The translations under genes and the position numbers were made by a program. Positions 2,079 through 62,805 of a stretch of 64,000 nt of DNA are shown one piece after another (within the stretch, counting starts at the first letter, position 1; each line of letters begins with the position of its first letter). This stretch comes from Epithemia pelagica (Eukaryota > Protista > Bacillariophyta). Under the pieces are notes generated by a model. That model was not told where the DNA came from and did no database searches. It saw only the letters and a list, made by a program, of their open reading frames with translations. The DNA lies in assembly GCA_946965045.2 (NCBI GenBank), contig OX337228.1:496001-560000 (forward strand), in the 5' to 3' direction.

Positions 2079-2205
2079 GATGAGACTGCAAAGAAAGGGA
2101 AGAAAAGGAATCAAAGGATGATGAGATCAACGATGATCGGTCAAAGAAAGGTAAGTGGTTATGGTGAAAGAGTGCTGGGGGAAGTTTTGGAGCTTCTGAT
2201 CAGAG

Positions 2206-2421
2206 TGCCATACCCATGTAAAATAGCACGGTATAAAAATTGTGATCTTTAGGAATTAGGAGGAATTAGGGGGAATGAGGAATCCACAGTGCCACGTGCG
2301 ACGAGAAATGACTGGAGGAGGAACAGCCAGATGGTGGGAGATTCATGTCGCAGTGTCAAGAACGCGAACCGGGAATGGAACGTGACGACACGTATGGCGG
2401 GATCCATATAGGGGTACCGCA
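2206..2421 (-). repeat. Gypsy 5' LTR (216 bp, TG...CA)
   Basis: Near-identical to 10609-10824 and 15573-15788; terminal inverted repeat TGCGGTACCC / GGGTATGGCA. Confidence 0.95.
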
Positions 2422-2474
2422 GGTAGTAGGTACTACAAGATGTTTCCGATAATTTTTGATAGGAGTAGAATCCG

Positions 2475-2569
2475 TCGCACAAGTTATACTATATGGTACA
2501 GTCGTCTCGATAAGGAGTACAGCTTCTTGTGTCTTGTGGTTGATTCACTTAACACACCGCAGACAAGAC
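2475..2569 (+). repeat. Terminal ~95 bp of the TCGCA...TGCGA LTR-like repeat family
   Basis: Matches the start of the 633-bp insert at 48104; inverted copy at 10461-10555; partial copies at 7302-7362 and 47694-47754. Confidence 0.8.
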
Positions 2570-2572
2570 TCA

Positions 2573-4171
2573 GGTTCGGTCTTATGGGAGCGTGATACCA
2601 TCTACCATCTCATATCATAATTTTTGCGCGCGTGTCCTGACATGGCAGCGTGATAAGATGATGAAGATGAATATCATGCGCAAATTTTTGACGCATGTGA
2701 TATTCATCCTTATCATCTTATCACGCTGGAGAATATCTTCCAGCTACCCCCAAGCTGAGGGTGAGTCATTAGTCGCACATGAGTCGAAGTACTACGTGCA
2801 TTCGTATACTCACCCCCTTGGCGCGAGGTCCTTTTTTGGCGATTTCTCGATTCTGATTTCTGATACAAACCTCATTGCACCTCAACACAGTCACTACGGC
2901 CACCAACGAGTGAGATTCATTTCACCACCCATCCTTGTTTCCAAGCTGATCCAAAGGTTACACCCAAGTCCGATACCCCTAACAACACCTTCTAGGTCAT
3001 CTACTTGGCCAACACAAGGCATTTGAGTTTGTATGGACACGTCCCATTCTACTATAGCTCCTCGGAATGGAAGTAGGATTTTCGTCTAATATAGCCTTAT
3101 ATTGCCCACGACGGCCGCGCTCTCATACGCGAGCAAGTGCGGAGCTAAACAAGCTAGTGCGGAGCAAAAAAAACAGTCCTGGGAAAAAAGTGTGACAGTT
3201 AATTAGGGGGGGGACTCGGAGGTTATAGAAGCAAGCGACATCCCCTCCTGGTCGTGGGGGCACTTGTCGGGGCTATTGACTCCTCGGCGGGCAATAGCTC
3301 CTCGTCGTGGACCGCCAAATCCGCTGACGCGGATTTAGAAGGCGGTCCACTTCTCGGAGCTATTGCCCTTCTCGGAGTCAATAGCCCCTCCTCGTGCCTC
3401 CCCACTCCGCGGAGCGGATGTAGAATTACTACTACACTCGACACAAACCGCATCCAATCGAAAAACATGTCTGTCTACCCCAAAAACTTTTTCTGACTGG
3501 CATGGCAAGAAAGCCCGTCCGTGGCAACTCCAAGCCTGTGAAGGTGTGCCTTGCATCCCTTCAACCATCCTTCTCGTTCGGTCAATTAATATGAATCAAT
3601 ACTAAACGAATTTATTTTTTATTTCAATGATTGCTTGTATGCTATTGCTCGGTCCAGTTTGTCTCCTACTGCTGTTCCATCGTTGTTTCCATTTGTCAAC
3701 CCTAACGTGCCTCCATCATCTTCCATTGCTTCCAATCTCTGAAAAAGCCTGTATCGGATGTCAAAGTCAAAGATTGAGGGGACACCGACGATGACGACAC
3801 AAGAGTCAATGGAGGATTGAATTTCAACAAGTCGCCGGTACTTTGCATGATAGAGGTGGATGTCATCGAATTTGTACAACGAGGCCTCCCTCTGTGATGT
3901 TCTTCACTGGCTGGGGAATTGACGAGTTCTTGTGCTTGCTGGTTTCTTGTGTTGCTCGGCAGCGACAGGAGGAGGGGATTGCTGTTGTGGTGGTCCTCGG
4001 GGATCAGTATGAAGAGGAGTGTTGGGAGAAGGGGCAAGGGTTGGAATGGTATACAAGGATGCACTAGGTGGATTGTTCGCATTTGATTGTTCGGTTCCCT
4101 GGTTGCCCATAGCACCACGATTGTTGGCCGTCTCAGTGGGATTGGCTAGTGGTTGCTGTCTTGCAACAGAA
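2573..4171 (-). mobile_element. Partial inverted copy of the 3-kb long-armed non-autonomous element (right arm plus part of the interior)
   Basis: Reverse complement of 9251-10457, plus a 374-bp insertion at 3055-3428. Confidence 0.85.
3055..3428 (-). mobile_element. 374-bp insertion of unknown class carrying a 152-nt rod hairpin with 5x5 internal loops
   Basis: Absent from the two homologous loci (~10000 and ~51045); flanked by the direct repeat CTACTA (3049-3054, 3429-3434); hairpin at 3254-3405. Confidence 0.8.
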
Positions 4172-4384
4172 ACCCATCATGCTCATAAATTCAAGACAGC
4201 ACTGTCTCGTCTGAGGAGACAGCCAGATTGACGTGGCAGCTTTGAATATACAAATCAGGAGAGAAGATGTTTGATGTTTGGCTTAGGTGGCCACGTTCAT
4301 GCCAAGTCAAAGGAAACAAAGCAGAGTCGATGTTGTCACTTTTCAAGGCAAACTACTTGTAGCCAGATAACATTTTTTCTTGCA

Positions 4385-5602
4385 ATGGACGATTGGATTA
4401 TTGATGCCGTGTTTGAAGAAGAGCTTGAGCTTGTTCTTGTCATCCATTTATTCAATCAAAGAAAACGTCTCCGACTCATGAAATGGCAACACCGTCGTCT
4501 CGATTGGGATGAATATGTTGCGATGCTTCTCCACACAAATGAGTTTGAGAACACTTTGCACATGAGTTATGAAGCATTCTCCATTCTAGTAGATTTGATA
4601 CGTCCTGGCATTTCCATCGATCCGATGCTCTCCAGCGCCGGCAGTGGCGGCAATGATCCAATCTATCCGGAAATGGTTGCATCAATCGGTCTACGTTGGT
4701 TTGGTGGAGAACTAGAGAAAAGTTTGAAGCATATCCATGGGGTATCGAGAGATACAGTCCGTCGCATGATCAACCTGTTTCTCAAAGCAGTAAAGGAATG
4801 TGAGCATCTTGCAATCCAACTGCCTACCACCGAGGAAGGCTTGAAGGAACTTGCCGATGGTTTTGGAGAAGTGAGTGAATCTCAAGGCCTCATGTATGGG
4901 TGTGTTGGAGCCATTGATGGGTGGCTCTGTACCCATGAACGCCCGAGGTTTGAAGAAAATCAGGCTGACTATTTCTCTGGCCATTACCATCGATATGGAT
5001 CAAACGTACAAGCGGTATGTGATTCGAAACTCAAATTTATATACGTTGCGTACGCTGCTCCTGGGAAAACAAACGACATCAACGCGTTTAGAATGTGCAC
5101 TGGTCTCCACGAGTGGATGCATGCGCTCACTCAAGAAAGAAAGTATTACCTTGTTGGCGACAACGCATATGAACTTTCTGACCAATTGTTGATTCCGTTC
5201 TCAGGCGCCAACATTTCAAGACAAAACTCAGACTTCAATTTCTTTTTGTCGCAAATGAGGATACGAATTGAAATGGCGTTTGGGAGATTGACAACGAAAT
5301 GGCGAATCTTCAGACGAGACTTCCAGTACGATGTAACAAAAATACGTGACACGGTAATGGTAGCATGCCAACTGCACAACTTTGTAATTGCGCATGGAGA
5401 TTCCATAGAGCAAAATGAAAATACAGAAGATTTTATTGAAGCCCTAGAACAAGCAAGAGATGGGCTCGGGTATTATGAAACTACGCAAGAAACAAGTGCA
5501 GTCGAGGTGGGCCATTCTGCAAGGCAAGAGTGGTTGTCGCAACAAATTCAACTCGAGGGTATTGGCCGTCCAACAGCCAACACCCTATTCATCAATCATT
5601 GA
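4385..5602 (+). CDS. PIF/Harbinger (HARBI1-like, DDE_Tnp_4 type) transposase, intact ORF
   Basis: Motifs GAIDG, NVQAVCD, PGKTND, LVGDNAY, FN..LSQMRIRIEMAFGRLTTKWRI, CQLHNF. Likely start MDDWII at 4385 (track ORF starts 4271). Confidence 0.92.
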   Translation: MDDWIIDAVFEEELELVLVIHLFNQRKRLRLMKWQHRRLDWDEYVAMLLHTNEFENTLHMSYEAFSILVDLIRPGISIDPMLSSAGSGGNDPIYPEMVASIGLRWFGGELEKSLKHIHGVSRDTVRRMINLFLKAVKECEHLAIQLPTTEEGLKELADGFGEVSESQGLMYGCVGAIDGWLCTHERPRFEENQADYFSGHYHRYGSNVQAVCDSKLKFIYVAYAAPGKTNDINAFRMCTGLHEWMHALTQERKYYLVGDNAYELSDQLLIPFSGANISRQNSDFNFFLSQMRIRIEMAFGRLTTKWRIFRRDFQYDVTKIRDTVMVACQLHNFVIAHGDSIEQNENTEDFIEALEQARDGLGYYETTQETSAVEVGHSARQEWLSQQIQLEGIGRPTANTLFINH

Positions 5603-5642
5603 ATAGTAGTAATGGTAGTACCACTGTAGTATCATTTTCCTC

Positions 5643-7005
5643 TTACTCCTCATTGTCCTTTGATGCATCCTCCATTGTTTTCATGACAGCTTTGTATCGC
5701 CTATCGATCACATGGAACTCACGTTCGGCCTCGAGGAACGCTTCACCAAACTCGTACCGCTGTGAATCAGAGGCAATAGTGCTTGTACTTTGTTGCGACA
5801 AAGGAATCTGTGGCTGAAATCCATCCAACTGTCCTCGCATTCGGTCTAGGACTCCATCATAGAGGTGCTTCTCTCCATCAATCTTTTTTGTTGCCTTGAG
5901 GTTTGCTGTAGCCGTCTTCATTTCATTTTTCTTTACGGTATGGAGTGGGGTCAATCGTTCAAGTTCAGCCGTCATAGCATTGGAGGCTTGAGCCTTTACA
6001 GCCGAGGCTTGATGTGCCACTAGCTTCTCTTTCAAAGCATTACTTGCTTTGATGGCTTCGACCAATTGTTTGTTAGACTCGTGGAGTTGCTTCTGTTTCT
6101 TGTAAGAGCGTTGGTTCTTTCCATCCAATGGGTTGGTCGACTGAGAGAAAACACTTGGATCCCGAAAGAAACAAACAAAGGACAAGGTCAGAAAGGTTTG
6201 CTTCTTCGACAAAGTTGTGAAAATACATCAAATAATACTTTGATTGAACAAAATGAATGAATGATTTCTGACTTTCTTGGTCTGTGGGAGGAGAGATCTC
6301 TTCATTATCTTCGTCGACATCTGAGTATGCATCACCATGGTTCCCAGAGCGTTTGTAGTTATAGAACGACGTAGTGTAGAGACGCCGCAGTTCGGCGACT
6401 GCCTTCTTTGCTTTCTCTTTGTCAAATCTTCCACGAAGGAGTCCTGGATTGACTGAGCTTTGATTGGGGATTCCTCCCCCATATTTATTTGCTTTCAATT
6501 CACTGTTATTGGCTTCATTGTATAGTTTGGCTATTTCTTCATGAAGAACGTCTGCAGGCAAGCGTCGGTCATCAATCTCACGACGAGTGGCTGTCGAACA
6601 CAGATTTGGGAGCAGTGGCTTGATTCTATCATGGGAAAGAACATTGACAAGACGGAAATAGTTGGTATACACGACTGTGCTTGTTGTTGGTATAGACTGA
6701 GTTGTCACCCTGTAGATTTTGGTCGTCCCAAAAATCACATCATCGTAGGTGATGGCCTCAACAATGTGCTTCCATTCTTCAATGGAAGAGGGTTTCCAGT
6801 CATGAAATGCAGGTTTGAAGTCAGGTAGACGATGGAAATTTGAGTTTGGAGCGACGCGTGGATCATTTTCTTCTACAAGCTGGGCTTTCCCGGCTACATC
6901 ACCACTAGCAACACCTCTGGAAACACCACCACCTGCATCAGATTGAGTTTGTTGTTGAGAGGCTTGGCTGTACTGTGTGACAATAGGGACAGAAGAGGTG
7001 CTCAT
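5643..7005 (-). pseudogene. Harbinger partner (putative DNA-binding) ORF, copy 1, disrupted
   Basis: Compared with the intact 45763..47397 copy: 276-bp in-frame deletion at ~6696 (TAG microhomology) and a 4-bp frameshift near 6170. Confidence 0.85.
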
Positions 7006-7235
7006 GATGATGGTCGAACCCAACAAAAACAAACACTCTGCTTTTTGTTGCTCCGAGTAGCATTGGCAGCAAAACGTTGCCCTCACAGCCCTTGCATGCT
7101 CGCAGTGACTTGCACGCAATTTTTGCGAGCGCCCGCGCTAAATTTTTAGATTTGGAGTCCCCCCTCGCACTCGCACCTGCCCCCGCACCAAAAAGTAGCC
7201 TGACAAGTTACCGTCTTAGCGGTTTTTTTGCTTCC

Positions 7236-7426
7236 GAATCGCGTTTTGGTGAGCATGAGCACCAGAATCGCGCTTTTGCTCGTCGATAGAATGGGCCCTG
7301 AGTCTTGTCTGCGGTGTGTTAAGTGAATCAACCTCAAGAAGTTGTACTCCTCATCGAGACGAATCGCGTTTTGGTGAGCATGGGCACCAAAATCATGCTT
7401 TTGCGCGTCGATAGAGTGGGCCCTGA
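7236..7426 (+). repeat. 125-bp-period duplication of the Harbinger end/flank junction (TIR end + TGA + LTR-like fragment)
   Basis: GAATCGCG...GGGCCC-TGA occurs at 7236-7301 and 7361-7426; the same arrangement is at 47628-47818. Confidence 0.85.
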
Positions 7427-10400
7427 GGTTCGGTCTTATCGGAGCGTGATATCATCTCATATCATAAGTTTTGCACGCTGGAAGATTACCCCCAAGCTGA
7501 GGGTGAGTATTTAGTCGCATATAAGTCGTACCTGAAGGTACTTCCTGTTACTCACCAGGGTTTGGAAGTCACGTTACCAGGCATACGAACTTGACTTTTA
7601 CAGCTAAAGTCTCTAATAAAATGTACTCTGACTTAACTTGTACTTTCAGAGTCGCTATCTAACAACTAGGAACTTGACTTCAACTTTACAGTTTTCCAAA
7701 TTCTTTCCCGCACCCCCCATCGACTTGACTTTACGTGTAAACTCAACCTGCATGGAATCCTGAACTCAACTTTGACTTTCATCCAAAGTCAAAGTCTCTG
7801 TCTCGCGAAAGCAACTTGACTTTAGGCTCTTTGACTTTACAGACTTTGACTTTAAGTCTCAGACTTTACGACATAAAGTCTCTATAACACACAACCACCA
7901 TGGGTATTTGTTGTTTAGACTTTAGACGTGAGACAGAAGTGCACACTTGCAACACTGCCCAATAGTCAGCAGTCAGCAATGCCCAGTGCCCAGTAAAGAA
8001 CCGAAGCACCTCCATCCTCCACCACTCTCCAATTGCCGTGGACCATGAACCATCGACACTCGACACCCTATAGACCCCATCTTTCAGTATGCAGTTCTTG
8101 CAATATAATCATCTCCCTAGAACACACTCCATTCTCTTTCTTTGCGCTAATGAAGACACAAGTCAATGTTACCATCAATGACTACAAAGCCAGACTTGAT
8201 TCCATCTCTGACACCATTTTCCTAGTGGGTTATAGGGTTACTAGCACTGTCATTTAACTTGTGTGGGTAAAGTCAGCGAGTACTACTACTGTGACTTGAC
8301 TTGTGTGGATAAAGTTGGAAGTGGTATGATAGGAACTTGACTTTGGGCGTTAAAGTCAGTGTTCTGTATGCTATGACTTTACTTTACTTGGTGGGGGGCG
8401 TGAAGTCGAGGCGATGCGGAGGGCTGACTTGACTTTGTGCGTAAAGTCAGTGCTACGAAGTTGAATGACTTGACTTTGGATAGTCCTAAAGTCTTAAAGT
8501 TGGTGTTAAAGTCTTAAAGTTTGGTGTTGTCCAAAGTCAGACTTCCAAACCCTGTTACTCACCCCCTTGGCGCGAGGCCCAAGCTCTCGATTCTGATACA
8601 AATTTCACATTACCTCCCTTCATTCATCACGGTAGTGGAGGTGCGGTGGTCTGTAACACTCCGAATGTCGACTTCTTCTTCACACAAACGACACCGTAGT
8701 TCCCAAAAGGATGTCAGGAAAGCCTTTGCGGCTCATCGCATTTTCGAAAGGTCCACGGCGTCCGATAGAGACGGTATAGAGAGAAAAGAGAATCGCCAAA
8801 AGCCATCCGACCTCTACATTGCCGAATGACTCCTCCTCTCCTTTCCCTAAACCTTCTTCCAAAAGAGGTGATGCGACCTCCTCCAATTCCCCATACAGGA
8901 CCCCTTTGGTGAACAACCCCCCGTATCAAGCTGCCGGCACCACGGGAAGACCGGAACCGTCCATCTTTTTGGACGCTGCTGCTGCCACCTCTCTGCCGAC
9001 CATCCCTTCGGTGCATAGCAACTCCACAAGACCTCAGATTCGTGTTACCTCCCATCCTTCTTTTCCCCACGCGGCTCCCGCCAGTCTTTCCTCTGCTACC
9101 GAAGCAGCTCCCATCAATTCTTCCTCGAATCCACAGCCTGGACAGACAAGGCTCTCTTCGACATTCTTTGAAACAGACGTGAATCCTTCGGTCAAGTGGA
9201 GTTTGGCACTCAATCTTCTCCTCCAAAGGCAATGCACGTCCTACCATCATCTTCTGTTGCAAAACAGCAACCACTAGCCAATCCCACTGAGACGGCCAAC
9301 AATCGTGGTGCTATGGGCAACCAGGGAACCGAACAATCAAATGCGAACAATCCACCTAGTGCATCCTTGTATACCATTCCAACCCTTGCCCCTTCTCCCA
9401 ACACTCCTCTTCATACTGATCCCCGAGGACCACCACAACAGCAATCCCCTCCTCCTGTCGCTGCCGAGCAACACAAGAAACCAGCAAGCACAAGAACTCG
9501 TCAATTCCCCAGCCAGTGAAGAAGATCACAGACTCGTTGTACAAATTCGATGACATCCACCTCTATCATGCAAAGTACCGGCGACTTGTCGAAATTCAAT
9601 CCTCCATTGACTCTTGTGTCGTCATCGTCGGTGTCCCCTCAATCTTGACTTTGACATCCGATACATGCTTTTTCAGAGATTGGAAGCAATGGAAGATGAT
9701 GGAGGCACGTTAGGGTTGACAAATGCAAACGACGATGGAACAGCAGTAGGAGACAAACTGGACCGAGCAATAAATTATTTGGAAGCATACAAGCAATCAT
9801 TGAAATAAAAAATAATTTCGTTTAGTATTGATTCATATTAATTGACCGAACGAGAAGGATGGTTGAAGGGATGCAAGGCACACCTTCACAGGCTTGGAGT
9901 TGCCACGGGCGGGCTTTCTTGCCATGCCAGTCAGAAAAAGTTTTCGGGGTAGACAGACATGTTATTCGATTGGATGCGGTTTGTGTCGAGTGTAGTAGAA
10001 TGGGACGTGTCCATACGAACTCAAATGCCTTGTGTTTGCCAAGTAGATGACCTAGAAGGTGTTGTTAGGGGTATCGGACTTGGGTGTAACCTTTGGATCA
10101 GCTTGGAAACAAGGATGGGTGGTGAAATGAACCTCACTCGTTGGTGGCCGTGGTGACTGTGTTGAGGTGCAATGAGGTTTGTATCAGAAATCAGAATCGA
10201 GAAATCGCCAAAAAGGACCTCGCGCCAAGGGGGTGAGTATACGAATGCACGTAGTGCTTCGACTCATGTGCGACTAATAACTCACCCTCAGCTTGGGGGT
10301 AGCTGGAAGATATTCTCCAGCAATGAATATCACATGCGTCAAAAATTTGCGCATGATATTCATCTTCATCATCTCATCACGCTGCCAATTCAGGACACGC

Positions 10401-10457
10401 GCGCAAAAATTATGATATGAGATGGTAGATGGTATCACGCTCCCATAAGACCGAACC
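7427..10457. mobile_element. 3-kb non-autonomous DNA element with long inverted arms and 3-bp TSD TGA (PIF/Harbinger-type by TSD and GG terminus)
   Basis: TIR GGTTCGGTCTTAT(C/G)GGAGCGTGATA(T/C)CATCT at both ends; TGA at 7424-7426 and 7458-equivalent right TSD at 10458-10460; arm similarity extends inward to ~8601 and ~10176. Confidence 0.8.
7556..8554. mobile_element. hAT-type MITE (999 bp)
   Basis: Perfect 15-bp TIR CAGGGTTTGGAAGTC; 8-bp TSD TTACTCAC (7548-7555, 8555-8562); dense GACTT/AAGTC subterminal motifs; no ORF. Confidence 0.9.
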
Positions 10458-10460
10458 TGA

Positions 10461-10555
10461 GTCTTGTCTGCGGTGTGTTAAGTGAATCAACCACAAGACA
10501 CGAGAAGCTGTACTACGTATCGAGACGACTCTACCATAAAGTATAACTTGTGCGA
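10461..10555 (-). repeat. Terminal fragment of the TCGCA...TGCGA LTR-like family
   Basis: Reverse complement of 48104-~48193; ends ...ACTTGTGCGA at 10555. Confidence 0.8.
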
Positions 10556-10608
10556 CGGATTCTACTCCTATCAAAAATTATCGGAAACATCTTGTAGTAC
10601 CTACTTAC

Positions 10609-10824
10609 TGCGGTACCCCTATATGGATCCCGCCATACGTGTCGTCACGTTCCATTCCCGGTTCGCGTTCTTGACACTGCGACATGAATCTCCCACCATC
10701 TGGCTGTTCCTCCTCCAGTCATTTCTCGTCGCACGTGGCACTGCGGATTCCTCATTCCCCCTAATTCCTCCGAATTCCTAAAGATCACAATTTTTATACC
10801 ATGCTATTTTACATGGGTATGGCA
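10609..10824 (+). repeat. Gypsy 5' LTR
   Basis: TG...CA, direct repeat of 15573-15788. Confidence 0.95.
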
Positions 10825-10951
10825 CTCTGATCAGAAGTTCAAAAACTTCCCCCAGCACTCTTTCACCATAACCACTTACCGTTCTTTGACCGATCCTCGT
10901 TGATCTCATCATCCTTTGATTCCTTTTCTTCCCTTTCTTTGCAGTCTCATC

Positions 10952-13900
10952 ATGAGCACAGGATCTTCCCTCGTCTCAATTGCGGATGTTCAACGCTTCC
11001 AAAAGCGCTTTGATCAAGCCTCGGCTTCAGATTCTTCCTCTGCTCTTTCCACCCTCAAGATGAAAGACGACAACGATGACAAGTACTATGTCCGTCTCAT
11101 ACCATTTCGAGATGGCGTGGATGAAGAGCCCTCGAATCTCTTCCTTTGGGTCCTCCATTTTGTTGACAAGGTCAAGATCTCCGGTCATCCAGAGCCCTTT
11201 GCTGCCTGTTGCACCTACTTTCCTCGTGTTGTTACCACAAGTCTCATTGCGGACAAGTTCCATGTTGCATTTCAGGCCCTGCCTGATGGCGCTGACCTTG
11301 ATGAAGCGTGTTTTAAACAGTTGATTGCTACAATCTTCGAACCCAAGTTGACTGTTTCCGAAGTCAACGCCTTCCGGGCACACCTCCTTTGCGGTCCTCG
11401 CAAGCCACCTGACATGACCGTTGATATTCATTATCACACCCTCCAAAAGATTTCGAACGGTCTCCGTTATTTGTCTAACGACAACGCTGTTCAGGCTCTC
11501 ACCGACGATGAGCTGAAGCAAGCCTTCTATCTTGGCTCCCCGGTTGCTTGGCGCAACGACTTCAAGACGGCCAATCCCTTGGTTGCAGATCTGGTGAATC
11601 ATTTCAATGTCACCGACCTCCTTCAAGCAATGCGTGGCTATCAACGGGCCTCTCAAGAAAAGATGGCTGCCAATACACAGTCCCAGGCCAAGTCCCGCAA
11701 TCCTCGCGATGATTCCACTTCTCGTGGTTCTTCCTCCAAGCATTTCCGCTCCTCTAATGGTGGTCGTGGCGGTCTCCGCGGCGGCAATCGCCACACCAAT
11801 GGTGAACGCCAAGCGTCCGGTGATCGTCCAGTCAATGACGGCGATGCCTGTCCTTACAGGGACACAATTTTCTCCGCAATGCCGATCGAACGGACCCCGG
11901 TATGTGTTCTTCTTCCTTTTTTGCTTCATCCTCTCCGGATGTCTCTCATCATCTTGATGTTCTTTTTGCTCAGCAATGTCACATCCAGACTGGCCCTCCA
12001 CAGGCTATGCTGGCCGAGAATGCCATCCTCAGGCCCCAATCCTCGAGGTCCGCCAACAATTGTTCAAGATCTACGGGCGTAACATGGATATCGCCCACAT
12101 CTACCACTTGTCCTCCCCTGGAGGCAACGCCGAATACCAACGCTTCCCCATGTCTTAAGGAATGCCCAAATCCTACGGATGCTGTCATCGCTGACATCGT
12201 TGATCCCAATAATGGTTTTTTATCTAACCTAGATCACTATGAAGATGTCTACTCATCTAGTTCTGTCTCTGACGCTCCTAGTTTCTCTAGTCCCCTTTCG
12301 GTCGCTCCCTCTGAGCCTCCGTCCGTTCCCCTCACCATTTTGATGGCTCGGTCCATTGGTGGAGTCGAGAACACCGTCCCGTTGCGTGCCCTGCTCGATT
12401 CAGGCGCCGACAAGACGATCCTGCACGCGCGTTGTCTTCAGCCCGGCATGCATCCACGTGTAACCAATCGGTCTGTCAATACCACCATGGGTACGCGCGA
12501 CCACGTCTCCGAGATTCTTCTCGGAGATTTGGTTCTCCCCGAGTTTTCTCGGACCAAACACATTTCATACCCCCTTTGGGCCGACATCTTTGATGCCCCC
12601 AATTGTCGTTGCGATATCATTATTGGCCGCGATCTCTTGCGTCGCTTGGGCATTGTGCTCAATTTCAACACTGGTCTCACAACTTGGGACTCAGTCGATG
12701 TCGCTATGCGCCATCGCGATTCATTCGCTACCGACCAGACATTGATGTCTCATTTCATCGACATCTTTGCCGACAATCCCATTATTGGTGATCAATTCCT
12801 CTTGGATTCCAACTACGTTCCTACGGATCTACAAGAGTTGATCAATAAACAAGACCATCTTACCGATGACCAAAAGCAAGATCTTCTTGCCATTTGGCAA
12901 GACTGTGGCAAGATTTTTGATGGTGAGCTCCGTGAATACCCGGATCGAACGCTCCATCTACATCTCAAGCCTGATGCCCAGCCTGTCCATCATCGCCATT
13001 TCTCGGTCCCTCGAAACATACACGATACCTTTACAAAGGAGCTGTGGCGCTTCGTCGACATCGGCATCCTTGAGCGCGTCGGTTCCACCGAATGGGCTGC
13101 TCCTCACTTTGCCATTCCTAAAAAGGATGGCCGCATCCGAATGATTTCGGACTTTCGTTCTTTGAACGCCCAACTCTACCGTCGGGTCTACCCCTTTCCT
13201 CTTATCGAGGATATGCTTCGTAAACGGAAAGGCTACAAATATTTTACCAAGTTGGACATCTCCATGTGTTTTTACACATTCCGCCTCGATGAGGAATCGA
13301 GCAATCTTTGCGTCATTACTACGCCTTTTGGCAAATTCCCTTACCGTCGTCTGCCGATGGGTGTCAAACAATCTCCTGACTTTTGTCAAGAGATAATGGA
13401 AGACGTCCTCAGTGACTTCAGCGACCATGTCGAAGTCTATATCGACGACATTGGCATCTTCTCCAATTCTTGGGAAGAACATGTGGACATCCTGTCCAAA
13501 GTTCTCCAACTTCTTCAAGAAAAGAACTTCTCCATTAACCCTTCCAAGTGTGAATGGGCCGTTAAAGAAACGGAATGGCTCGGCCATTGGCTTACACCCA
13601 CTGGGATCAAACCCTGGAAAAAGAAAATCTCTGCGTTTGGTCCCCGCAATGTCAACGTGCTTTCGAACAAGCCAAGTCCATGCTCGCACATGATGCCTTT
13701 CTTCGGTATCCCGACCATAACCTTTCCTTCCATGTCTATGTGGACGCCTTTGATTACCAGCTTGGCGCTGTAATCATGCAACAAGACGTTCCCGTCGCAT
13801 ATTACTCTCGCAAGTTGAACCCTGCTCAACGCAACTACACTACTATGGAAAAGAAGTTGCTCTCAATTGTCGAAACCCTGAAAGAGTTCCGCTCCATGCT

Positions 13901-15572: not shown

Positions 15573-15788
15573 TGCGGTACCCCTATATGGATCCCGCCAT
15601 ACGTGTCGTCACGTTCCATTCCCGGTTCGCGTTCTTGACACTGCGACATGAATCTCCCACCATCTGGCTGTTCCTCCTCCAGTCATTTCTCGTCGCACGT
15701 GGCACTGTGGATTCCTCATTCCCCCTAATTCCTCCGAATTCCCAAAGATCACAATTTTTGTACCGTGCTATTTTACATGGGTATGGCA
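15573..15788 (+). repeat. Gypsy 3' LTR
   Basis: TG...CA, followed by CTACC, which matches the 5' flank of the inverted copy. Confidence 0.95.
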
Positions 15789-15991
15789 CTACCTACTCCT
15801 AATCATTATGTTCTCGAAAATTCAAGTGTTTGCTGCATGACAATACTACCTATTGAAATAACATGTGAATCCTTTTAGTATAACTAAAATCGAATATCAG
15901 GGGGGAGTTGATTCAGGCTATCTACCTAGATGATTTGCATGTACTTTTATGTTGCACTGAGAGAGGGTCGAGCGATCACGACTCTCATCCA

Positions 15992-19356: not shown

Positions 19357-19373
19357 AATTGGGAGCAGCCGAC

Positions 19374-19451
19374 GCGCCTTGGGGGTGAGTAAGGGAATAC
19401 AGGCGCAGCGTATTCGATCACGCGGGACTCACTCACCCCTGCTTGGGGGTA
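19374..19451 (-). mobile_element. Mini-MITE-like inverted-repeat module (GGGTGAGT...ACTCACCC)
   Basis: Reverse strand reads TACCCCCAAGCAGGGGTGAGT-~40 nt-ACTCACCCCCAAGGCGC, as in the arms of the 3-kb element (2746-2825). Confidence 0.6.
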
Positions 19452-21039
19452 AGGTTTTGTCGAGGGAAAGGGTAATCGTTTGCGCCGGGAGGGAGGACGT
19501 TGCGCGTCAGAGCCTGTCGACCTCTTATACTCGCGTCACAAAAAATAACGCCAACCCCTACGTTTGGCCAAGACCAAAAGGGCGACAAGTCCTGGTCCCG
19601 GAGAGATGAACGATGGTCTTTTCCCCAACCAGAATCCCGAGCCCCCCAACCATTCTTCCCTAGAAGTATTGATGGCCACAGCGACCATCCAGTACTAGTC
19701 TACGTATATTTACGTATGTAGAGAAATGTACCAACTACGTATGTAGGGCATGGAATTTGGAATCTTGCTTCTACTGAGGACTTCCAGTATAGGAAGACTA
19801 TGGCTTAGTTGCGAAAACTACCCGTCGTCACAAAGGAGATTTCAAGTTTTTGAGTGAAACAAAGTACTCCATTGGCTTGGGCTTGGTTCGACTTGGCAAA
19901 GGACCAGTATTCCGATGATGGCTATACAATAAAACCAACATGGCAAAGGTTGTGGATACAGTGAAAGGTCTACTGTTCATTTCAGCCTCTGGTTTCCGTA
20001 CTTTCGAGCCAGAATGTCTACAATAGCTACTGCTCACATTCCGACACAATGGTGGAATCGTGGGATGACTCATGTGTTTAAGAAGTCAATTATCTTTGAC
20101 TCCAAACCACTGGGACCAAATCCATCATTTTAACCTCCCACTTTTCCATTCCGTGGTGGCAATCCACATACTTGCACCCGACTGGAAACAAGAGTGTTTC
20201 TGGTAGCTAATGTACGAGAGGTATCAACCTTCTCTGCCTACTCCCAGTGTAATGTATAGCTATAGTGACTGCCTTGTTCATGTATTGCTATTTCCATCGG
20301 TTGCCAGTAGATGAATCCTCATCAATCAACCTGGCTAGCTTAAACCCTACATGGAAGCAAAGAGTCCGGCTAACCGTAGAACAGTTCTAAATTGGACTGC
20401 ACTGTTGTATCATTTGACACTTACCCCATACCCTATACATCTCCATGGTTGGTTGTTGATCCACGGGTGGCATGGGTGGTGCTGGCAAGGGATCCTGCCG
20501 GACGTGCCTCTTTCCTGGGGCATCCTCAAAGTCGACCTACATGGTATGGGCTCTGCTTTTTCATCCTTTCCCTTTTCTGTTCTACAAAATGTAGTAACAA
20601 CCACAAGAGAGACAGTCCGTATCATCTACGGCAAGTTACTCTATTGCCAGAAACCTTTTGTATCTACTTCTATTGCATTGCTCTAGCTAGTAGGTACTCG
20701 TAGACACTACTAGATATGGTTAGTATGATTCCATTGCCGTATCTGGTCTGTACGTAGCTAACCTACCAGAAATTCTGATGGCCATTCGGCCAACTAACTT
20801 TGAAGACGCGGATCATTGTCAATTACTACGGAGCTACCGGCGTCGAGACTATTTCTAGTCATCGCAAAATTGTCGGCCAAATGGCCATCAGAAGGCGCGA
20901 TTTTACCGCGACTTGGCCAACAAAACCGAGGTAATGGACATCCCCAGAACCAGAAAGCAATCGTTTTGTTGTCGAATTCATCCTTGTTGTTTTTATCATC
21001 CTACAAATCGTCACAAGAACGATCCAATCCTTCTGTACA

Positions 21040-47397: not shown

Positions 47398-47947
47398 GAT
47401 GATGGTCGAACCCAACAAAAACAAACACTCTGCTTTTTGTTGCTCCGAGTAGCATTGGCAGCAAAACGTTGCCCTCACAGCCCTTGCATGCCCGCAGTGA
47501 CTTGCAAGCAATTTTTGCGAGCGCCCGCGCTAAATTTTTAGATTTGGAGTCCCCCCTCGCACTCGCACCTGCCCCCGCACCAAAAAGTAGCCTGATAAGT
47601 TACCGTCTTAGCAGTTTTTTTGCTTCCGAATCGCGTTTTGGTGAGCATGAGCACCAGAATCGCGCTTTTGCTCGTCGATAGAATGGGCCCTGAGTCTTGT
47701 CTGCGGTGTGTTAAGTGAATCAACCTCAAGAAGTTGTACTCCTTATCGAGACGAATCGCGTTTTGGTGAGCATGTGCACCAAAATCATGCTTTTGCGCGT
47801 CGATAGAGTGGGCCCTGAGGTTCGGTCTTATCGGAGCGTGATATCATCTCATATCATAAGTTTTGCACGCTGGAAGATTACCCCCAAGCTGAGGGTGAGT
47901 ATTTAGTCGCATATAAGTCGTACCTAAAGGTACTTCCTGTTACTCAC

Positions 47948-49599
47948 CAGGGTTTGGAAGTCACGTTACCAGGCATACGAACTTGACTTTTACAGCTAAA
48001 GTCTATAATAAAATGTACTCTGACTTAACTTGTACTTTCAAAGTCGCTATCTAACAACTAGGAACTTGACTTCAACTTTACAGTCTTCCAAAGTCTTTCC
48101 CGCTCGCACAAGTTATAGGTATCCGATCGAGTCGTCTCGATAAGGAGTACACCTTCTTGTGGTTGATTCACTTAACACACCGTAGACAAGACTCGAACTA
48201 TCATAACTAGTTCTCTAGGTATGCTATAGAAGACGAGATTGGCGCCATTGACCATGACGGGACTACCAACATTGGCTTACATGTGAGAATCAAAGATACA
48301 TGTGAGAACCTGTGGTCATTGGGAAATGGACAATCATCCAAGGATACGTACAGGATACGTAGACACGGTACATTAGAGATATGACCCAGTAGATCCTCGT
48401 AGCCTTAGTACATTTGGGAAGAAATGCACGTAGGATCTCTGTACCCAGTACTGGGGATAATAACCTAATGTGGCAGCAAAGACAGCCATGGGGAAAGACA
48501 TACAAATCTAGAATAAAGCTCACAATCTAAAATCTCACCATTCATCACATCTCTTTGTGTCCTACCTACTCTCCTAGTAGTTGTTGGCCTTTTCCTTGAC
48601 CCGTGGGGAACTGGCTACGTAGTTGGTGACTCCTGATTGTCCTCTTTGCTCTCTGTCTGCTGAGGCTTTGGTACAGCCTCTAAAACCTAACACTCACCAC
48701 ATTCCTGTTTGGGCAGACGCCCTTTAACCTTTGCGACCCGCACCCCCCATCGACTTGACTTTACGTGTAAACTCAACCTGCATGGAATCCTGAACTTGAC
48801 TTTGACTTTCATCCAAAGTCAAAGTCTCTGTCTCGCGAAAGCAACTTGACTTTAGGCTCTTTGACTTTACAGACTTTGACTTTAAGTCTCAGACTTTACG
48901 ACATAAAGTCTCTATAACACACAACCACCATGGGTATTTGTTGTTTAGACTTTAGACGTGAGACAGTAGTGCACACTTGCAACACTGCCCAATAGTCAGC
49001 AGTCAGCGTTGCCCAGTGCCCAGTAAAGAACCGAAGCACCTCCATCCTCCATCACTCTCCAATTGCCGTGGACCATGAACCATCGACACTCGACACCCTA
49101 TAGACCCCATCTTTCAGTATGCAGTTCTTGCAATATAATCATCTCCCTAGAACACACTCCATTCTCTTTCTTTGCGCTAATGAAGACACAAGTCGATGTT
49201 ACCATCAATGACTACAAAGCCAGACTTGATTCCATCTCTGACACCATTTTCCTAGTGGGTTATAGGGTTACTAGCACTGTCATTTAACTTGTGTGGGTAA
49301 AGTCAGCGAGTACTACTACTGTGACTTGACTTGTGTGGATAAAGTCGGAAGTGGTATGATATGAACTTGACTTTGGGCGTTAAAGTCAGTGTTCTGTATG
49401 CTATGACTTGACTTGCTATGACTTGACTTTACTTGGTGGGGGGCGTGAAGTCGAGGCGATGCGGAGGGCTGACTTGACTTTGTGCGTAAAGTCAGTGCTA
49501 CGAAGTTGAATGACTTGACTTTGGATAGTCCTAAAGTCTTAAAGTTGGTGTTAAAGTCTTAAAGTTTGGTGTTGTCCAAAGTCAGACTTCCAAACCCTG
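47948..49599. mobile_element. hAT-type MITE, copy 2, containing a 633-bp insert
   Basis: Same 15-bp TIR and TTACTCAC TSD (47940-47947, 49600-49607). Confidence 0.9.
48104..48736 (+). mobile_element. Solo-LTR-like insert (633 bp) with TCGCA...TGCGA ends
   Basis: 5-bp TSD CCCGC (48099-48103, 48737-48741); empty site in the first MITE copy (~7710); terminal IR TCGCACAAGTT / TCGCAAAGGTT. Confidence 0.75.
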
Positions 49600-51253
49600 T
49601 TACTCACCCCCTTGGCGCGAGGCCCAAGCTCTCGATTCTGATACAAATTTCACATTACCTCCCTTCATTCATCACGGTAGTGGAGGTGCAGTGGTCTGTA
49701 ACACTCCGAATGTCGACTTCTTCTTCACACAAACGGCACCGTAGTTCCCAAAAGGATGTCAGGAAAGCCTTTGCGGCTCATCGCATTTTCGAAAGGTCCA
49801 CGGCGTCCGATAGAGACGGTATAGAGAGAATAGAGAATCGCCAAAAGCCATCCGACCTCTACATTGCCGAATGACTCCTCCTCTCTTTTCCCTCTACCTT
49901 CTTCCAACAGAGGTGATGCGACCCTTTCCAATTCCCCATACAGGACCCCTTTGGTGAACAACCCCCCGTATCAAGCTGCCGGCACCACGGGAAGACCGGA
50001 ACCGTCCATCTTTTTGGACGCTGCTGCTGCCACCTCTCTGCCGACCATCCCTTCGGTGCATAGCAACTCCACAAGACCTCAGATTCGTGTTACCTCCCAT
50101 CCTTCTTTTCCCCACGCGGCTCCCGCCAGTCTTTCCTCTGCTACCGAAGCAGCTCCCATCAATTCTTCCTCCAATCCACAGCCTGGACAGACAAGGCTCT
50201 CTTCGACATTCTTTGAAACAGACGTGGATCCTTCGGTCATGTGGAGTTTGGCACTCAATCTTCTCCTCCAAAGGCAATGCACATCCTACCATCATCTTCT
50301 GTTGCAAAACAGCAACCACTAGCCAATCCCACTGAGACGGCCAACAATCGTTGTGCTATGGGCAACCAGGGAACCGAACAATCAAATGCGAACAATCCAC
50401 CTAGTGCATCCTTGTATACCATTCCAACCCTTGCCCCTTCTCCCAACACTCTTCTTCATACTGATCCCCGAGGACCACCACAACAGCAATCCCCTCGTCC
50501 TGTCGCTGCCGAGCAACACAAGAAACCAGCAAGCACAAGAACTCCTCAATTCCCCAGCCAGTGAAGAAGATCACAGACTCGTTGTACAAATTCGATGGCA
50601 TCCACCTCTATCATGCAAAGTACCGGCGACTTGTCGAAATTCAATCCTCCATTGACTCTTGTGTCGTCATCGTCGGTGTCCCCTCAATCTTTGACTTTGA
50701 CATCCGATACAAGCTTTTTCAGAGATTGGAAGCAACGGAAGATGATGGAGGCACATTTGGGTTGACAAATGGAAACGACGATGGAACAGTAGGGAGACAA
50801 ACTGGACCGAGCAATAAATTATTTGGAAGCATACAAGCAATCATTGAAAAAAAAAATTCGTTTAGTATTGATTCATATTAATTGACCAAACGAGAAGGAT
50901 GGTTGGAGGGATGCAAGGTGACGATGGAGCACACCTTCACAGGCTTGGAGTTGCCACGGACGGGCTTTCTTGCCATGCCAGTCAGAAAAAGTCTTCGGGG
51001 TAGACAGACATGTTTTTCGATTGGATGCGGTTTGTGTCGAGTGTAGTAGAATGGGACGTGAGATGACCCAGAAGGTGTTGTTAGGGGTATCGGACTTGGG
51101 TGTAACCTTTGGATCAGCTCGGAAACCAGGATGGGTGGTGTAATGAACCTCACTCATTGGTGGCCGTGGTGACTGTGTTGAGGTGCAATGAGGTTTGTAT
51201 CAGAATCGAGAAATCGCCAAAAAAGGACCTCGCGCCAAGGGGGTGAGTATTAA

Positions 51254-51427
51254 TAATTCCCGGTGTCGAGTCCTTTCAAGGAGGGACCGCCCGGCGCGAA
51301 GGGTAGAATGACGAGGAGGGCAATGGTCGCGGAGGGCGCATGTCCGACAAGACAATTGCCCGTCGAGTCATTCTCCCGACAAGCCGGGCGCGCCCGACGC
51401 GAAAGGACGGCCAGACACAGGGAATTA
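51254..51427 (+). other. 174-nt rod hairpin with four 5x5 internal loops (structured element of unknown class)
   Basis: Stems TAATTCCC/GGGAATTA, GTCCTTTC/GAAAGGAC, CGCCCGGC/GCCGGGCG, AGAATGAC/GTCATTCT, GGGCAAT/ATTGCCC; homologous to the minus strand of 3254-3405. Confidence 0.75.
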
Positions 51428-51476
51428 GTAAACTTACTCCCTATCAGGCTGTGTAGTTAGTGAGACTTCCTGGAAG

Positions 51477-51516
51477 AAGTGTCACACAAGTGTCACGCAA
51501 GTGTCATACAAGTGTG
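51477..51516 (+). repeat. 11-bp tandem repeat (AAGTGTCA(C/T)(A/G)C x ~3.5)
   Basis: aagtgtcacac aagtgtcacgc aagtgtcatac aagtgtg. Confidence 0.85.
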
Positions 51517-51610
51517 TTGGTTCTCGAGGAGGGCAAACACAATCTTCAATCTTCATCAACGCCATGCAGATACATTCCATCGGATTGTTCGCAACTTCTT
51601 GGATAGCAAC

Positions 51611-52705
51611 ATGACTGCTCAAGAGGAAGAGATCAGCGAAAAGGAAGAAGAACCAAAGATTGATGAGATTGCCTATCCCTTTATGGGCAAGAAAGCGTTA
51701 TTTTCAGGACTTCGATCTGGCGTATTTGATGCCATTCATGACGCAGTTGCTGCTAATGAGAGCGACAGCTCGAAACGACCGGAGGTATCTTTTGAAAGTA
51801 TAGAGAAGCGGTGTAGCGTGAAGGGAGAACGCTTATGTACGTTGCTCTCAGCGTGTGTGGCCCTATCACTTGTTCGTCGCCGATATACAACGGATGGCCT
51901 GGAGATGTTTTCGCTTCCCAAAGCATCGGCTCATCAACTGGTTCGTTCATCCAAGCGATACTGGGGTGATTATATCTCCGGACAGGTGGACGCACAATTC
52001 TACAGCCGCATGGCAGATTTACATGATACATTAGAATCAGGGAGTACCTCATCGCATGGGTATGACGCGTGGTTTGAATCCGATCCAGAAGCGGCGGAAC
52101 GATACACAAAAGCACAACACAATGGATCATTGGCCACGGCATATGCACTCCATAAGCGACTGCCAGAACTGGCCCAGGAGCGCAGCTCACTGCGCATGTT
52201 GGATGTGGGTGGGGAATCGGGTGCCTTTTCCATTGCCAGTTGCCCAAAGCATTGTGAATCGAGAACCCGACATTCCGGTGCGAGAACGAGTATCGACGTT
52301 GGCTCTTTCGGCGTCGGCTCCTGGAGACTGGGAAGGAGTGGTTGAACCTGAATCCTTTGACGTCGTATTGATGAGCTTTGTCAGTGGGTCTATTCCTCAC
52401 CAAGCTCTCGAAGGATTATATAGAAATGCTTTTCGAGCCCTCAAGCCCGGTGGATTGGCAGTCCTTCATGACTTCTTCGTCGACAATAGCGGCCGTGGTC
52501 CACAAAATGCTGCGCTCTGGCCTTGGCACATGTAACAGTCAATCCGGAAGGCATGGGACTTCGACCGAATCGTATCATCAAGCTTCTATGTGGCAACGAT
52601 GAGCATTGTGGAGCCGGATTTATTGCACCGAAAGTCCTCGATTTGGTCCCAGAGACAACCCAAGTGATTGTGGCTACCAAACCGGAAAAACAAAATCCTG
52701 CATAG
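51611..52705 (+). pseudogene. Class I SAM-dependent O-methyltransferase (COMT/ASMT-like) with two frame breaks
   Basis: N-terminal dimerisation-like region, LDVGGESG (motif I), FDVVLMS, ALKPGGLAVLHDF; split over ORFs 51479, 52056, 52523. Confidence 0.85.
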
Positions 52706-53988: not shown

Positions 53989-54114
53989 GACCCATGGACT
54001 AACCTATGCGGCAATCGACCTCTTTGACGAGCAGCGACAACCACAATGACGAACAAACAGACCCATGGACCAACCAACGCAGCAATCAACCTCTTTGACG
54101 AGCAGCGACAACCA
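53989..54114 (+). repeat. ~71-bp-period tandem duplication
   Basis: GACCCATGGAC...CCTCTTTGACGAGCAGCGACAACCA at 53989 and 54060. Confidence 0.85.
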
Positions 54115-55016
54115 GAACAAGCAACGACAAGGAGGAGCAACAAGATCACGACAAATGACTCTACGAGTACGACGAAGCACAATAAGCTACTCGTCTAAAC
54201 TTCCTACTGCGAAAGCGAGCAGCGCACATGGAAACCAGCATGGCTTGCAAGCAGCTGGATCCTCTACCACGACAACCTCGACCGACGAGCCACCCACAGC
54301 AGCAGCACCATATCCATTTTTGCATACATTTCCTGCAGCAGGCTTGGCCGAGGCTGGGTCACAGGCGGTAACGGAACCGTTGGATTTGATAAGCATTCGC
54401 CATCAAATTGCTCCACCAGGTGGAGAAGAGACGTGGGATAGGATTTAGTCGACCTATGGCTACGTATCAAAGGGTCTGGAAGGCTCGCTACTGCAGCCAG
54501 AATGAAAATAAATTATGAACGAAAGCAAAATGGAGAAAGAAAGCAACAATCAACTACGGTCAACTAGACAGAATAGGACGCGAATTCTCCCTCTCTCAAA
54601 CGCATGTGGCCATAAGTACCATCAACATCAGCAAACCAGTCTCATGATGATCGTCAAAAGTGTGACCGTCTCCATTCCAGCTGCTGTTCCATCCTCATTG
54701 TCGGTTGGTGAACAACAAGACGGGTTTGTGAATGAAGGTCTCTTACTTAAAAAACCGTTGAAAACAGACAAATACAGCGGAATGTCTGCTTAGTGATAAG
54801 AGTTTCATGCTCATTTCAGGCCCGCAAGCATCCACCAGAAATATAGACCTATATCCGCTAGTAATCATGTAGAGAAAGCTACTCCTACTATACCCACTGG
54901 CTCCTGAATACTGAACTCAGCCGTCATACCGCCTTGGCGGTTCAATCTACCTAGATGATTTGCATGTACTTTTATGTTGCACTGAGAGAGGGGTGAGCGA
55001 TCACGACTCTCATCCA

Positions 55017-62338: not shown

Positions 62339-62500
62339 ATTGGCAGTAGTTTCGTGGTGTGCTGTTGTTCTTGTGCGAGGCTCAACCTCCAACCGGGTTG
62401 GGTTTGCGGCGGAGAAGAAACAGTTGATCCATGATTGCACCAAAACTCAGTTTTTTGTGTGTATGGCGGGGTGTTTGTTGTTTGTGGTATTTGCGTCTTT

Positions 62501-62609
62501 TAGCTCCCAGCGGGGGTGAGTAGAGGTCGCTTATGAGTCGAGTTCTCCATCCGAATGCATCGAAGATGCTGACCAACCTGCGACCTAGACTCACCCTTTC
62601 TGGGGAGTA
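62501..62609. mobile_element. 109-bp mini-MITE with ~30-bp imperfect TIRs, TA at both ends
   Basis: TAGCTCCCAGCGGGGGTGAGTAGAGGTCGC vs reverse complement TACTCCCCAGAAAGGGTGAGTCTAGGTCGC (22/30 by eye). Confidence 0.6.
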
Positions 62610-62805
62610 AACCAAATCCGGCCCGGCCCGCACGGATTGGTTTTGTTGAGCTGAAGGAATGGCCTTACATATGCATTACGCAAAAAATGACTATCCGACC
62701 AATTCCCTATAGTAGTCTTCCTACCGAATATAGTGTCTTTGTGGATCGCCGACCGGTTTGGTCTGTGGATCTCTTCAATGTCGGTTCTCTCTATTCTACT
62801 ACCTA

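Follow-up and report, generated by a model that had tools for sequence, protein, structure and literature searches.

E2, an insertion that begins at 51251 in the 64-kb window (the whole stretch of DNA that was analysed), is quite probably a resident copy of a non-autonomous DNA transposon whose left end is a fold-back of ~180 nt with G.A-bracketed 5x5 internal loops. A partner element in the same window, E1, is mobile, as established from three paralogs, one carrying the element and two with the site empty. The preliminary description had singled out the E2 hairpin as the best candidate for an undescribed structured-nucleic-acid element. The hairpin does appear to be undescribed, of one kind with that of E1 and covarying with it; however, it is the end module of mobile non-coding insertions rather than an independent element or gene. 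The same description had allowed that the family might turn out to be a known transposon subterminal repeat: in substance it is a transposon subterminal repeat, but not one already described.

The E2 rod and its loop code

The plus strand at 51240-51440 folds as a single hairpin with a DNA free energy of -55.1 kcal/mol, compared with -31.3 ± 3.3 kcal/mol for dinucleotide shuffles (z = -7.2), none of 200 shuffles being as good, which bears out the rod hairpin claimed at this place; the rod unit is 51251-51431. Using RNA parameters, the same segment reaches -117.9 (z = -11.6). The complementary strand folds more weakly (DNA, -49.8 versus -55.1; RNA, -98.6 versus -117.9), and the strand bias predicted from nearest-neighbour energies is modest. 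The rod begins at the first base of E2, TAATAATTCCC (51251-61) being paired with GGGAATTAGTA (51420-30). The four loops are those claimed earlier, AAGGA/GACGC, GCGAA/GACAA, GAGGA/GTCGA and GCGGA/GACAA. Coordinates are collected in Table 1.

Table 1. Features of E2, E1 and their surroundings (window positions, except for the relic at locus L092)
Feature	Position	Strand	Remarks
E2 rod hairpin unit, TAATAATTCCC...GGGAATTAGTAA	51251..51431	+	Defined by folds, loop table and left edge in copies A/B versus C
E2 rod, short apex	51335-51344	+	
E2 5'-arm loop modules	51277..51334	+	CAAGGAG 51277, CGCGAAG 51295, CGAGGAG 51312, CGCGGAG 51328
E2 3'-arm loop modules	51345..51401	+	CGACAAG 51345, CGTCGAG 51361, CGACAAG 51377, CGACGCG 51395
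GAGTAT, target-side left flank of E2	51245..51250	+	Also in uninterrupted paralogs, 10235-10240 and 2806-2811
Possible E2 tail, membership uncertain	51432..51540	+	11-bp repeat AAGTGTCACAC x3.5 (51477-51515), TTCTCGAGGAGGGCAA (51521-51536)
CAATCTT, 7-bp tandem repeat	51540..51555	+	2.3 copies here, one on the other haplotig; only nearby haplotig difference
O-methyltransferase gene, downstream of E2	51611..52535	+	Frame change near 52300, an intron or frameshift
E1, 380-nt element, TAATTC...GGAGCTATAGTAG	3049..3428	-	Rod 3405-3254; absent at paralogous sites 10001/10009 and 51052/51060
Decayed E2-type relic	L092:10104-10262		Follows ..ATGTAT, starts CAATTCC; 84% identical over 51255-51411
Left arm of separate palindromic module (CCTCGCGCCAAGGGGGTGAGTAT)	51215..51250	+	E2 starts at the expected place of the loop
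Palindromic module copies	2740-2816, 7490-7556, 10205-10325, 19360-19465, 47880-47948, 62495-62615	-, +, +, +, +, +	

All eight internal loops, four in E2 and four in the E1 hairpin (3254-3405, minus strand), have 5'-C[G N G R A]G-3' opposite 5'-C[G N C R A]G-3', i.e. the layout C-G, G.A, N.N, G-C, N.N, A.G, G-C. Both closing pairs and the middle G-C are present in 8/8 loops, position 1 is G.A in seven of the eight, and position 5 is A.G in every one. Purine-purine oppositions fill 26 of the 32 non-Watson-Crick cells and a pyrimidine-pyrimidine opposition only one (binomial P = 3.5e-8 versus one third). The loops are spaced 15-20 nt apart along the rods. The 7-mer CGNSRAG is dense, being found six times in 89 nt of E2 and nine times in ~150 nt of E1, on one element strand only, against a window background of ~1 per 900 nt per strand. 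The loop consensus proposed earlier is therefore a non-random code, although its count of seven has to be corrected to eight loops over two hairpins.

Sheared G.A-bracketed 'zipper' motifs of the d(GCGNNAGC) type have been described in DNA (survey, PMC6061790; mini-hairpins, PMC13037366). The rod loops resemble them in the succession of a C-G closing pair, G.A, an unpaired or stacked centre, A.G and a G-C closing pair. In the zippers, which were studied in short oligonucleotides (PMC6061790, PMC13037366), the centre consists of one or two bases, whereas the rod loops, in which the G.A geometry is predicted, have a centre of three positions, the middle one a conserved G-C, and recur every 16-20 nt along a natural 180-nt rod.

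Searches for relatives of the rod gave the following. The covariance models of Rfam 15 did not match it, the sole hit being a sub-threshold snoRNA outside the rod, and neither a palindrome scan nor nhmmer found further rods in the 64-kb window plus 120 kb of other DNA. In metagenome contigs, ATTGCCCGNCGAG..CCCGACAAG gave 21 hits, and AGGGCAAT..ATTGCCCGNCGAG gave 61 hits in prokaryote genomes and one in a viral contig; all were bacterial chance matches without the opposite arm.

E1 is mobile and enters in one orientation

Self-comparison revealed a repeated block with three copies in the window: A (minus strand, 4171 down to 1156), B (9252-11878) and C (50297-51250). At the site GTGTAGTAG^AATGGG (^ marks a junction here and below), B and C are uninterrupted and A carries TAATTC...GGAGCTATAGTAG (3428 down to 3049), which is E1. 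The empty site has a single TAGTAG. The E1 hairpin (3230-3440, minus strand) folds at -74.5 kcal/mol (z = -12.9). E1 lies in a large inverted duplication whose arms (1-4171 and 9252-12632), 96-98% identical, enclose a centre with a Harbinger element (4172-9251). Part of a Gypsy element belongs to the duplication, and E1 entered one arm after it had arisen.

Using the translated E1 hairpin, four ORF products were recovered from ENA assembly ERZ21939226, which also holds the window region. Their contigs contain three further full copies of E1, with 97-98% identity, and one that breaks off at the hairpin tip. The copies occupy unrelated contexts, e.g. behind a LINE ORF. The truncated copy (L090:10256-10368) stops exactly at the apical loop of the hairpin (..GCGTCAGCGGA^unrelated sequence), a break at the fold-back tip.

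The left flanks of the five copies are TAGTAG, ATGTAG, GGGTTG, ACGTAG and TGGTGG, with the consensus NNGTNG, and the right end is constant (..GCTATAGTAG) and is followed by unrelated sequence, TAGTAG being present on the right only. The element therefore enters in one orientation after GTNG, with no duplication and with its own GTAG at the right. The element's TAATT is kept at all five left junctions, and all right junctions continue as target sequence; there is no shared overlap, though target and element spacers differ. The two ends of E1 are also related to each other: its last 22 nt pair with its first 26 nt at -13.6 kcal/mol, compared with -6.3 ± 1.7 kcal/mol for shuffles (0/1000). As the right end is complementary to the left subterminal bases, joining the two creates a small palindrome, ..ATAGTAG^TAATT CTACAT.., next to the rod. 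Target sequence on the right side shows a tendency to look like the left end of E1 (at L089, AACTCTACAT versus AATTCTACAT, P = 0.003; combined P = 0.016), which is suggestive only.

These junctions bear on whether the rod is an ordinary DDE fold-back element or MITE, or else a chance or decaying palindrome. The long inverted repeat, the small size and the many copies would suit such an origin, and the window is full of DDE elements (Harbinger, 4271-5602; a 997-nt TIR element with a 10-bp duplication, 7557-8553). However, in place of the terminal inverted repeats and target duplication of MITEs and DDE fold-backs, E1 has five differing left flanks against a constant TAGTAG at the right, and its palindrome is subterminal at one end instead of terminal at both. 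Moreover, random decay of a perfect palindrome would not yield mismatches that are periodic, predominantly purine-purine and confined to one strand. We consider this origin very unlikely.

E1 and E2 are related families with a covarying hairpin

The global alignment of the E1 and E2 rods scores 44, compared with 21.7 ± 5.9 for dinucleotide shuffles (0/500). Within the alignable 33-column module (a loop, a stem, a loop and the first 7 bp of the next stem), in which pair changes were counted by script, 18 pairs are identical and three have changed on both sides and are still paired (C-G to A-T, T-A to G-C and T-A to A-T); there are no one-sided changes. A bulge accounts for the loss of one pair, and both arms of the stem are shortened by 3 bp. 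Two claims of the preliminary description are thereby upheld, namely that the 3' arm aligns with that of 3254-3405 (minus strand), for which the 18 identical pairs speak, and that the stem between the loops has changed in sequence and length while staying paired, as seen in the three compensatory pairs and the symmetric 3-bp shortening.

E2 is further like E1 in its start (here after GTAT), in its loop code and in the strand on which the code lies relative to the start, and the base of its rod takes the role of the right end (AGTAT^TAAT...AGTAA^). Both 5' ends do contain TA(A/G)TAATTC, as had been pointed out, but the first three bases in E1 are target DNA and vary among copies; the conserved element start is (T/C)AAT..TTC. 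Since nhmmer with either element alone misses the other, E1 and E2 are distinct families, and the overall similarity between their tails is not significant.

E2 is an old resident copy

Copies A, B and C of the repeated block are identical through ..CCAAGGGGGTGAGTAT (51250), after which C reads TAATAATTCCC.. and A and B read ACGAATG... E2 thus starts where the 97-99% paralogous block stops matching. The suggestion that it replaces the right arm of a 3-kb element holds only in this sense, i.e. that the paralogy with the copies ending at 10240 and 2806 stops exactly at 51250.

An exhaustive protein-profile search with the hairpin ORF found two more E2-type sequences, and exact and word peptide searches found no match for the E2 hairpin peptide or for the internal ORF of E1. 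The decayed relic at L092 lacks 12 nt of one arm, each of its changes breaks a pair, and the rod fold is lost (-33 versus -51 kcal/mol). From their flanks (Table 1), E2 and the relic therefore both start after GTAT, as E1 does after GTAG. The similarity between their tails is marginal (10/300). The relic lies directly upstream of a eukaryotic Topo VIB gene in the same sense, and the gene caller ran the ORF through the relic.

On the second haplotig, ctg1332l (L091), which is 99.4% identical over 12.6 kb, E2 is identical and there is no empty site. E2 is thus an old, fixed copy of a second subfamily, and as a resident copy it is probably immobile. The CAATCTT tandem repeat directly follows the TTCTCGAGGAGGGCAAACA box. 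A 512-nt segment of the window (54019-54530) is absent from the other haplotig (L091:12556), a difference that removes the start of a mitochondrial-carrier-like ORF, with no transposon ends evident.

Among the E1 copies, 10 variable sites fall in the hairpin and 12 in the tail. Because the E1 hairpin varies like the tail and the L092 relic has lost its fold, selection on the fold acts in the transposing lineage and does not maintain resident copies. The E2 copy therefore contributes cross-family covariation, a second target (GTAT) and evidence of the decay of resident copies.

The rod might instead be a functional RNA, either a small-RNA hairpin precursor or a structured 5' leader of the methyltransferase transcript, its presence in mobile elements being secondary. 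The plus strand does fold best as RNA, by the values given above, tandem G.A loops are common in RNA, and E2 and the L092 relic each lie just upstream of a gene in the same sense; for E2, the ATG of the O-methyltransferase is at 51611, 180 nt past the rod, in agreement with the ~180 bp first estimated. We regard a functional RNA as improbable nonetheless, given the lack of an Rfam match, the decay of resident copies without compensation and the unrelated contexts of the E1 copies.

Candidates for the right end of E2

Three positions were considered as the right end of E2. The first, 51431 (..TTAGTAA), pairs with the left end at -14.5 kcal/mol (0/1000 shuffles), and no other site up to 56000 does so. 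An end at 51431 gives direct repeats like those of E1 (AGTAT^...AGTAA^) and agrees with how far the homology to the L092 relic reaches. The second, 51458, has GCTGTGTAG, which is like GCTATAGTAG of E1, and does not pair with the left end. The third, at ~51540, follows from the 3.5 copies of AAGTGTCACAC and TTCTCGAGGAGGGCAA downstream, to which AACTGTCACAC and the end TTCCGAGGAGCTATAGTAG correspond in E1; it does not pair with the left end either (225/1000 shuffles). The 11-bp tandem repeat noticed earlier 3' of the rod is indeed present, at 51477-51515. In E1, the boxes AACTGTCACAC and TTCCGAGGAGCTAT stand in the same order as the boxes of 51432..51540, and these two E1-tail-like boxes past the rod speak for an element that is longer or has been truncated. 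Moreover, the last 12 nt of the TTCTCGAGGAGGGCAA box copy the hairpin at 51312-51323, and the terminal CGAGGAGCTAT of E1 copies the hairpin at 3304-3294. We give the end at 51431 close to an even chance and a longer element whose true right end has been lost a chance somewhat below even, leaving a small share to other outcomes.

Comparison with known systems and a possible mechanism

Cryptons have terminal direct repeats of 4-6 bp, taken as the crossover site, and neither terminal inverted repeats nor target duplications (Kojima and Jurka 2011, PMC3212892). Their non-autonomous derivatives are 350-750 bp long, and Cryptons are present in stramenopiles including a diatom (PMC3212892). E1 is similar in having no terminal inverted repeats or duplication, a short direct repeat at its termini and a size of a few hundred bp. 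Its five copies have ends of this type (GTNG^TAATTC...TAGTAG^), and E2 has them (AGTAT^...AGTAA^) only if it ends at 51431; E1 sites are seen both filled and empty, and the E2 site is filled and identical on both haplotigs. The papers on Cryptons and introners present such transposons as having no structural features. The elements described here differ in bearing, at one end, a rod of 180-200 nt whose loops follow a fixed code, and in the palindrome formed by the joined ends.

A second likeness is to the attC site of integrons, a folded single-strand substrate of a tyrosine recombinase (PMC2727003); it is bacterial and 60-140 nt long, with extrahelical bases and one central spacer. Both are imperfect palindromes conserved in structure and not in sequence, both have unpaired features on one strand, which in attC set the choice of strand, and the one-point joints of E1 are consistent with single-strand exchange. 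The rod differs from attC in its four regular 5x5 G.A-bracketed loops and in belonging to a eukaryote, and its use as a single strand would be by analogy.

These likenesses suggest how E1 and E2 may have moved. The element would pass through a joined-end form, which for E2 would read ..AGTAA followed by TAATAATTC.. and for E1 ..GTAG followed by TAATTC.., and a site-specific recombinase provided in trans would act at G^T. On the purine-loop strand, the rod may present a series of modules for recognition or strand selection, possibly as folded single-stranded DNA. By analogy, the enzyme is most likely a Crypton-type tyrosine recombinase. A more specific proposal, which we put forward tentatively, is that the rod of a eukaryotic tyrosine-recombinase transposon folds as single-stranded DNA into an attC-like recombination site, where one strand would be exchanged at G^T before replication, the loops marking the active strand and docking several recombinase subunits. 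If this is true, it would be the first structured, strand-specific Crypton end to be described and would parallel, in a eukaryote, the recombination of integrons and of CTX phage. Neither in the window nor in six 20-kb loci (L087-L092) was a recombinase or transposase gene found, and the assignment of the enzyme class therefore rests on analogy.

The junctions of E1 are as expected from exchange of one strand followed by replication, of the kind known from integron attC sites and CTX phage, and also from an HUH single-strand transposase. An HUH enzyme of the IS200/IS605, Helitron or Replitron kind would bind one strand of the hairpin and cut on the 3' side of GTAG or GTAT. It would account for orientation-specific insertion 3' of a 4-nt target with neither duplication nor terminal inverted repeats, for a subterminal imperfect hairpin with strand-specific mismatches and for the five left junctions that keep TAATT, a logic shared by IS608. 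In this member of IS200/IS605, each end has a short hairpin and the transposase is of the HUH type (PMC3201880, PMC5027513); like the present elements, it inserts 3' of a specific tetranucleotide without duplication and has subterminal imperfect hairpins used on the top strand only. In contrast, E1 and E2 have a single very long rod, at the left end only, their ends can pair mutually, and no Rep or HUH ORF was seen in the DNA examined. Nor are the ends those of Helitrons (5'-TC...CTRR-3', insertion between A and T, a short 3' hairpin), as they read TAATTC...GTAG after GTNG with the hairpin 5'. Replitrons have been reported as undetected in any diatom. In addition, the joined ends of E1 and some of its targets resemble small inverted-repeat core sites (GTAG-N4-5-CTAC) of the kind used by recombinases; the palindrome at the joined ends, with a hint of the same in the targets, points to a recombinase core site. 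An HUH enzyme is thus an unlikely agent, and a tyrosine recombinase remains our preferred one.

Eukaryotic tyrosine-recombinase DNA transposons are poorly understood and, being reputed to lack structural landmarks, are hard to annotate. A rod that is conserved and strand-asymmetric and follows a simple loop code would provide a landmark for such transposons and their gene-less passengers and a substrate for biochemistry, and would hint at the use of folded single-stranded DNA.

The breakpoint at E2 and a separate palindromic module

The paralogy between copies B and C ends at 10240/51250 and resumes only at 15920/54945. Between these breakpoints, B has 497 nt and a Gypsy element (LTRs, 10609-10826 and 15573-15790), whereas C has E2 and 3.4 kb that encode the methyltransferase plus a mitochondrial-carrier fragment. 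Compared with B, then, E2 does not amount to a simple insertion. A simple-insertion model was rejected as well, since the sequence after E2 does not match the continuation of the paralog (best local score 27). Also discarded was a 3.7-kb cargo element that would have E2 at its left end and extend to the second breakpoint at 54944, there being no right-end-like site up to 56000; the ORFs downstream of E2 toward 54944 are the methyltransferase and the mitochondrial-carrier fragment only, with no recombinase. E2 marks the exact break of a large duplicated block upstream of a host gene, which matters for the history of rearrangement in the region.

The bases preceding E2 belong to the left arm of a separate palindromic module of ~100 nt, CCTCGCGCCAAGGGGGTGAGTA - variable loop - ACTCACCC(T)CAGCTTGGGGGTA; as considered beside E2, its form is CCTCGCGCCAAGGGGGTGAGTA - loop - ACTCACCCTCAGCTTGGGGGTA. 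Recombination in the conserved left arm of this module would end the paralogy there, so a sharp breakpoint does not need E2 activity. The segment 51432-51460 was tried as the right arm of the module and rejected, as its likeness is not significant (60/500 shuffles). Positions 51240-51250 pair with 51431-51441 through seven Watson-Crick and two G.T pairs, and the target of E2 may therefore itself have been a small palindrome.

The word GGGGTGAGTA occurs 13 times against 2.5 expected. Both strands of the module contain GTGAGT, which resembles a 5' splice site; the module may therefore be a MITE or an introner-type repeat. The right arm of one copy contains a 997-nt element (7557-8553, with a copy near 47949-48945) that has 14-nt terminal inverted repeats, AGGGTTTGGAAGTC, and is flanked by a 10-bp direct repeat, GTTACTCACC.
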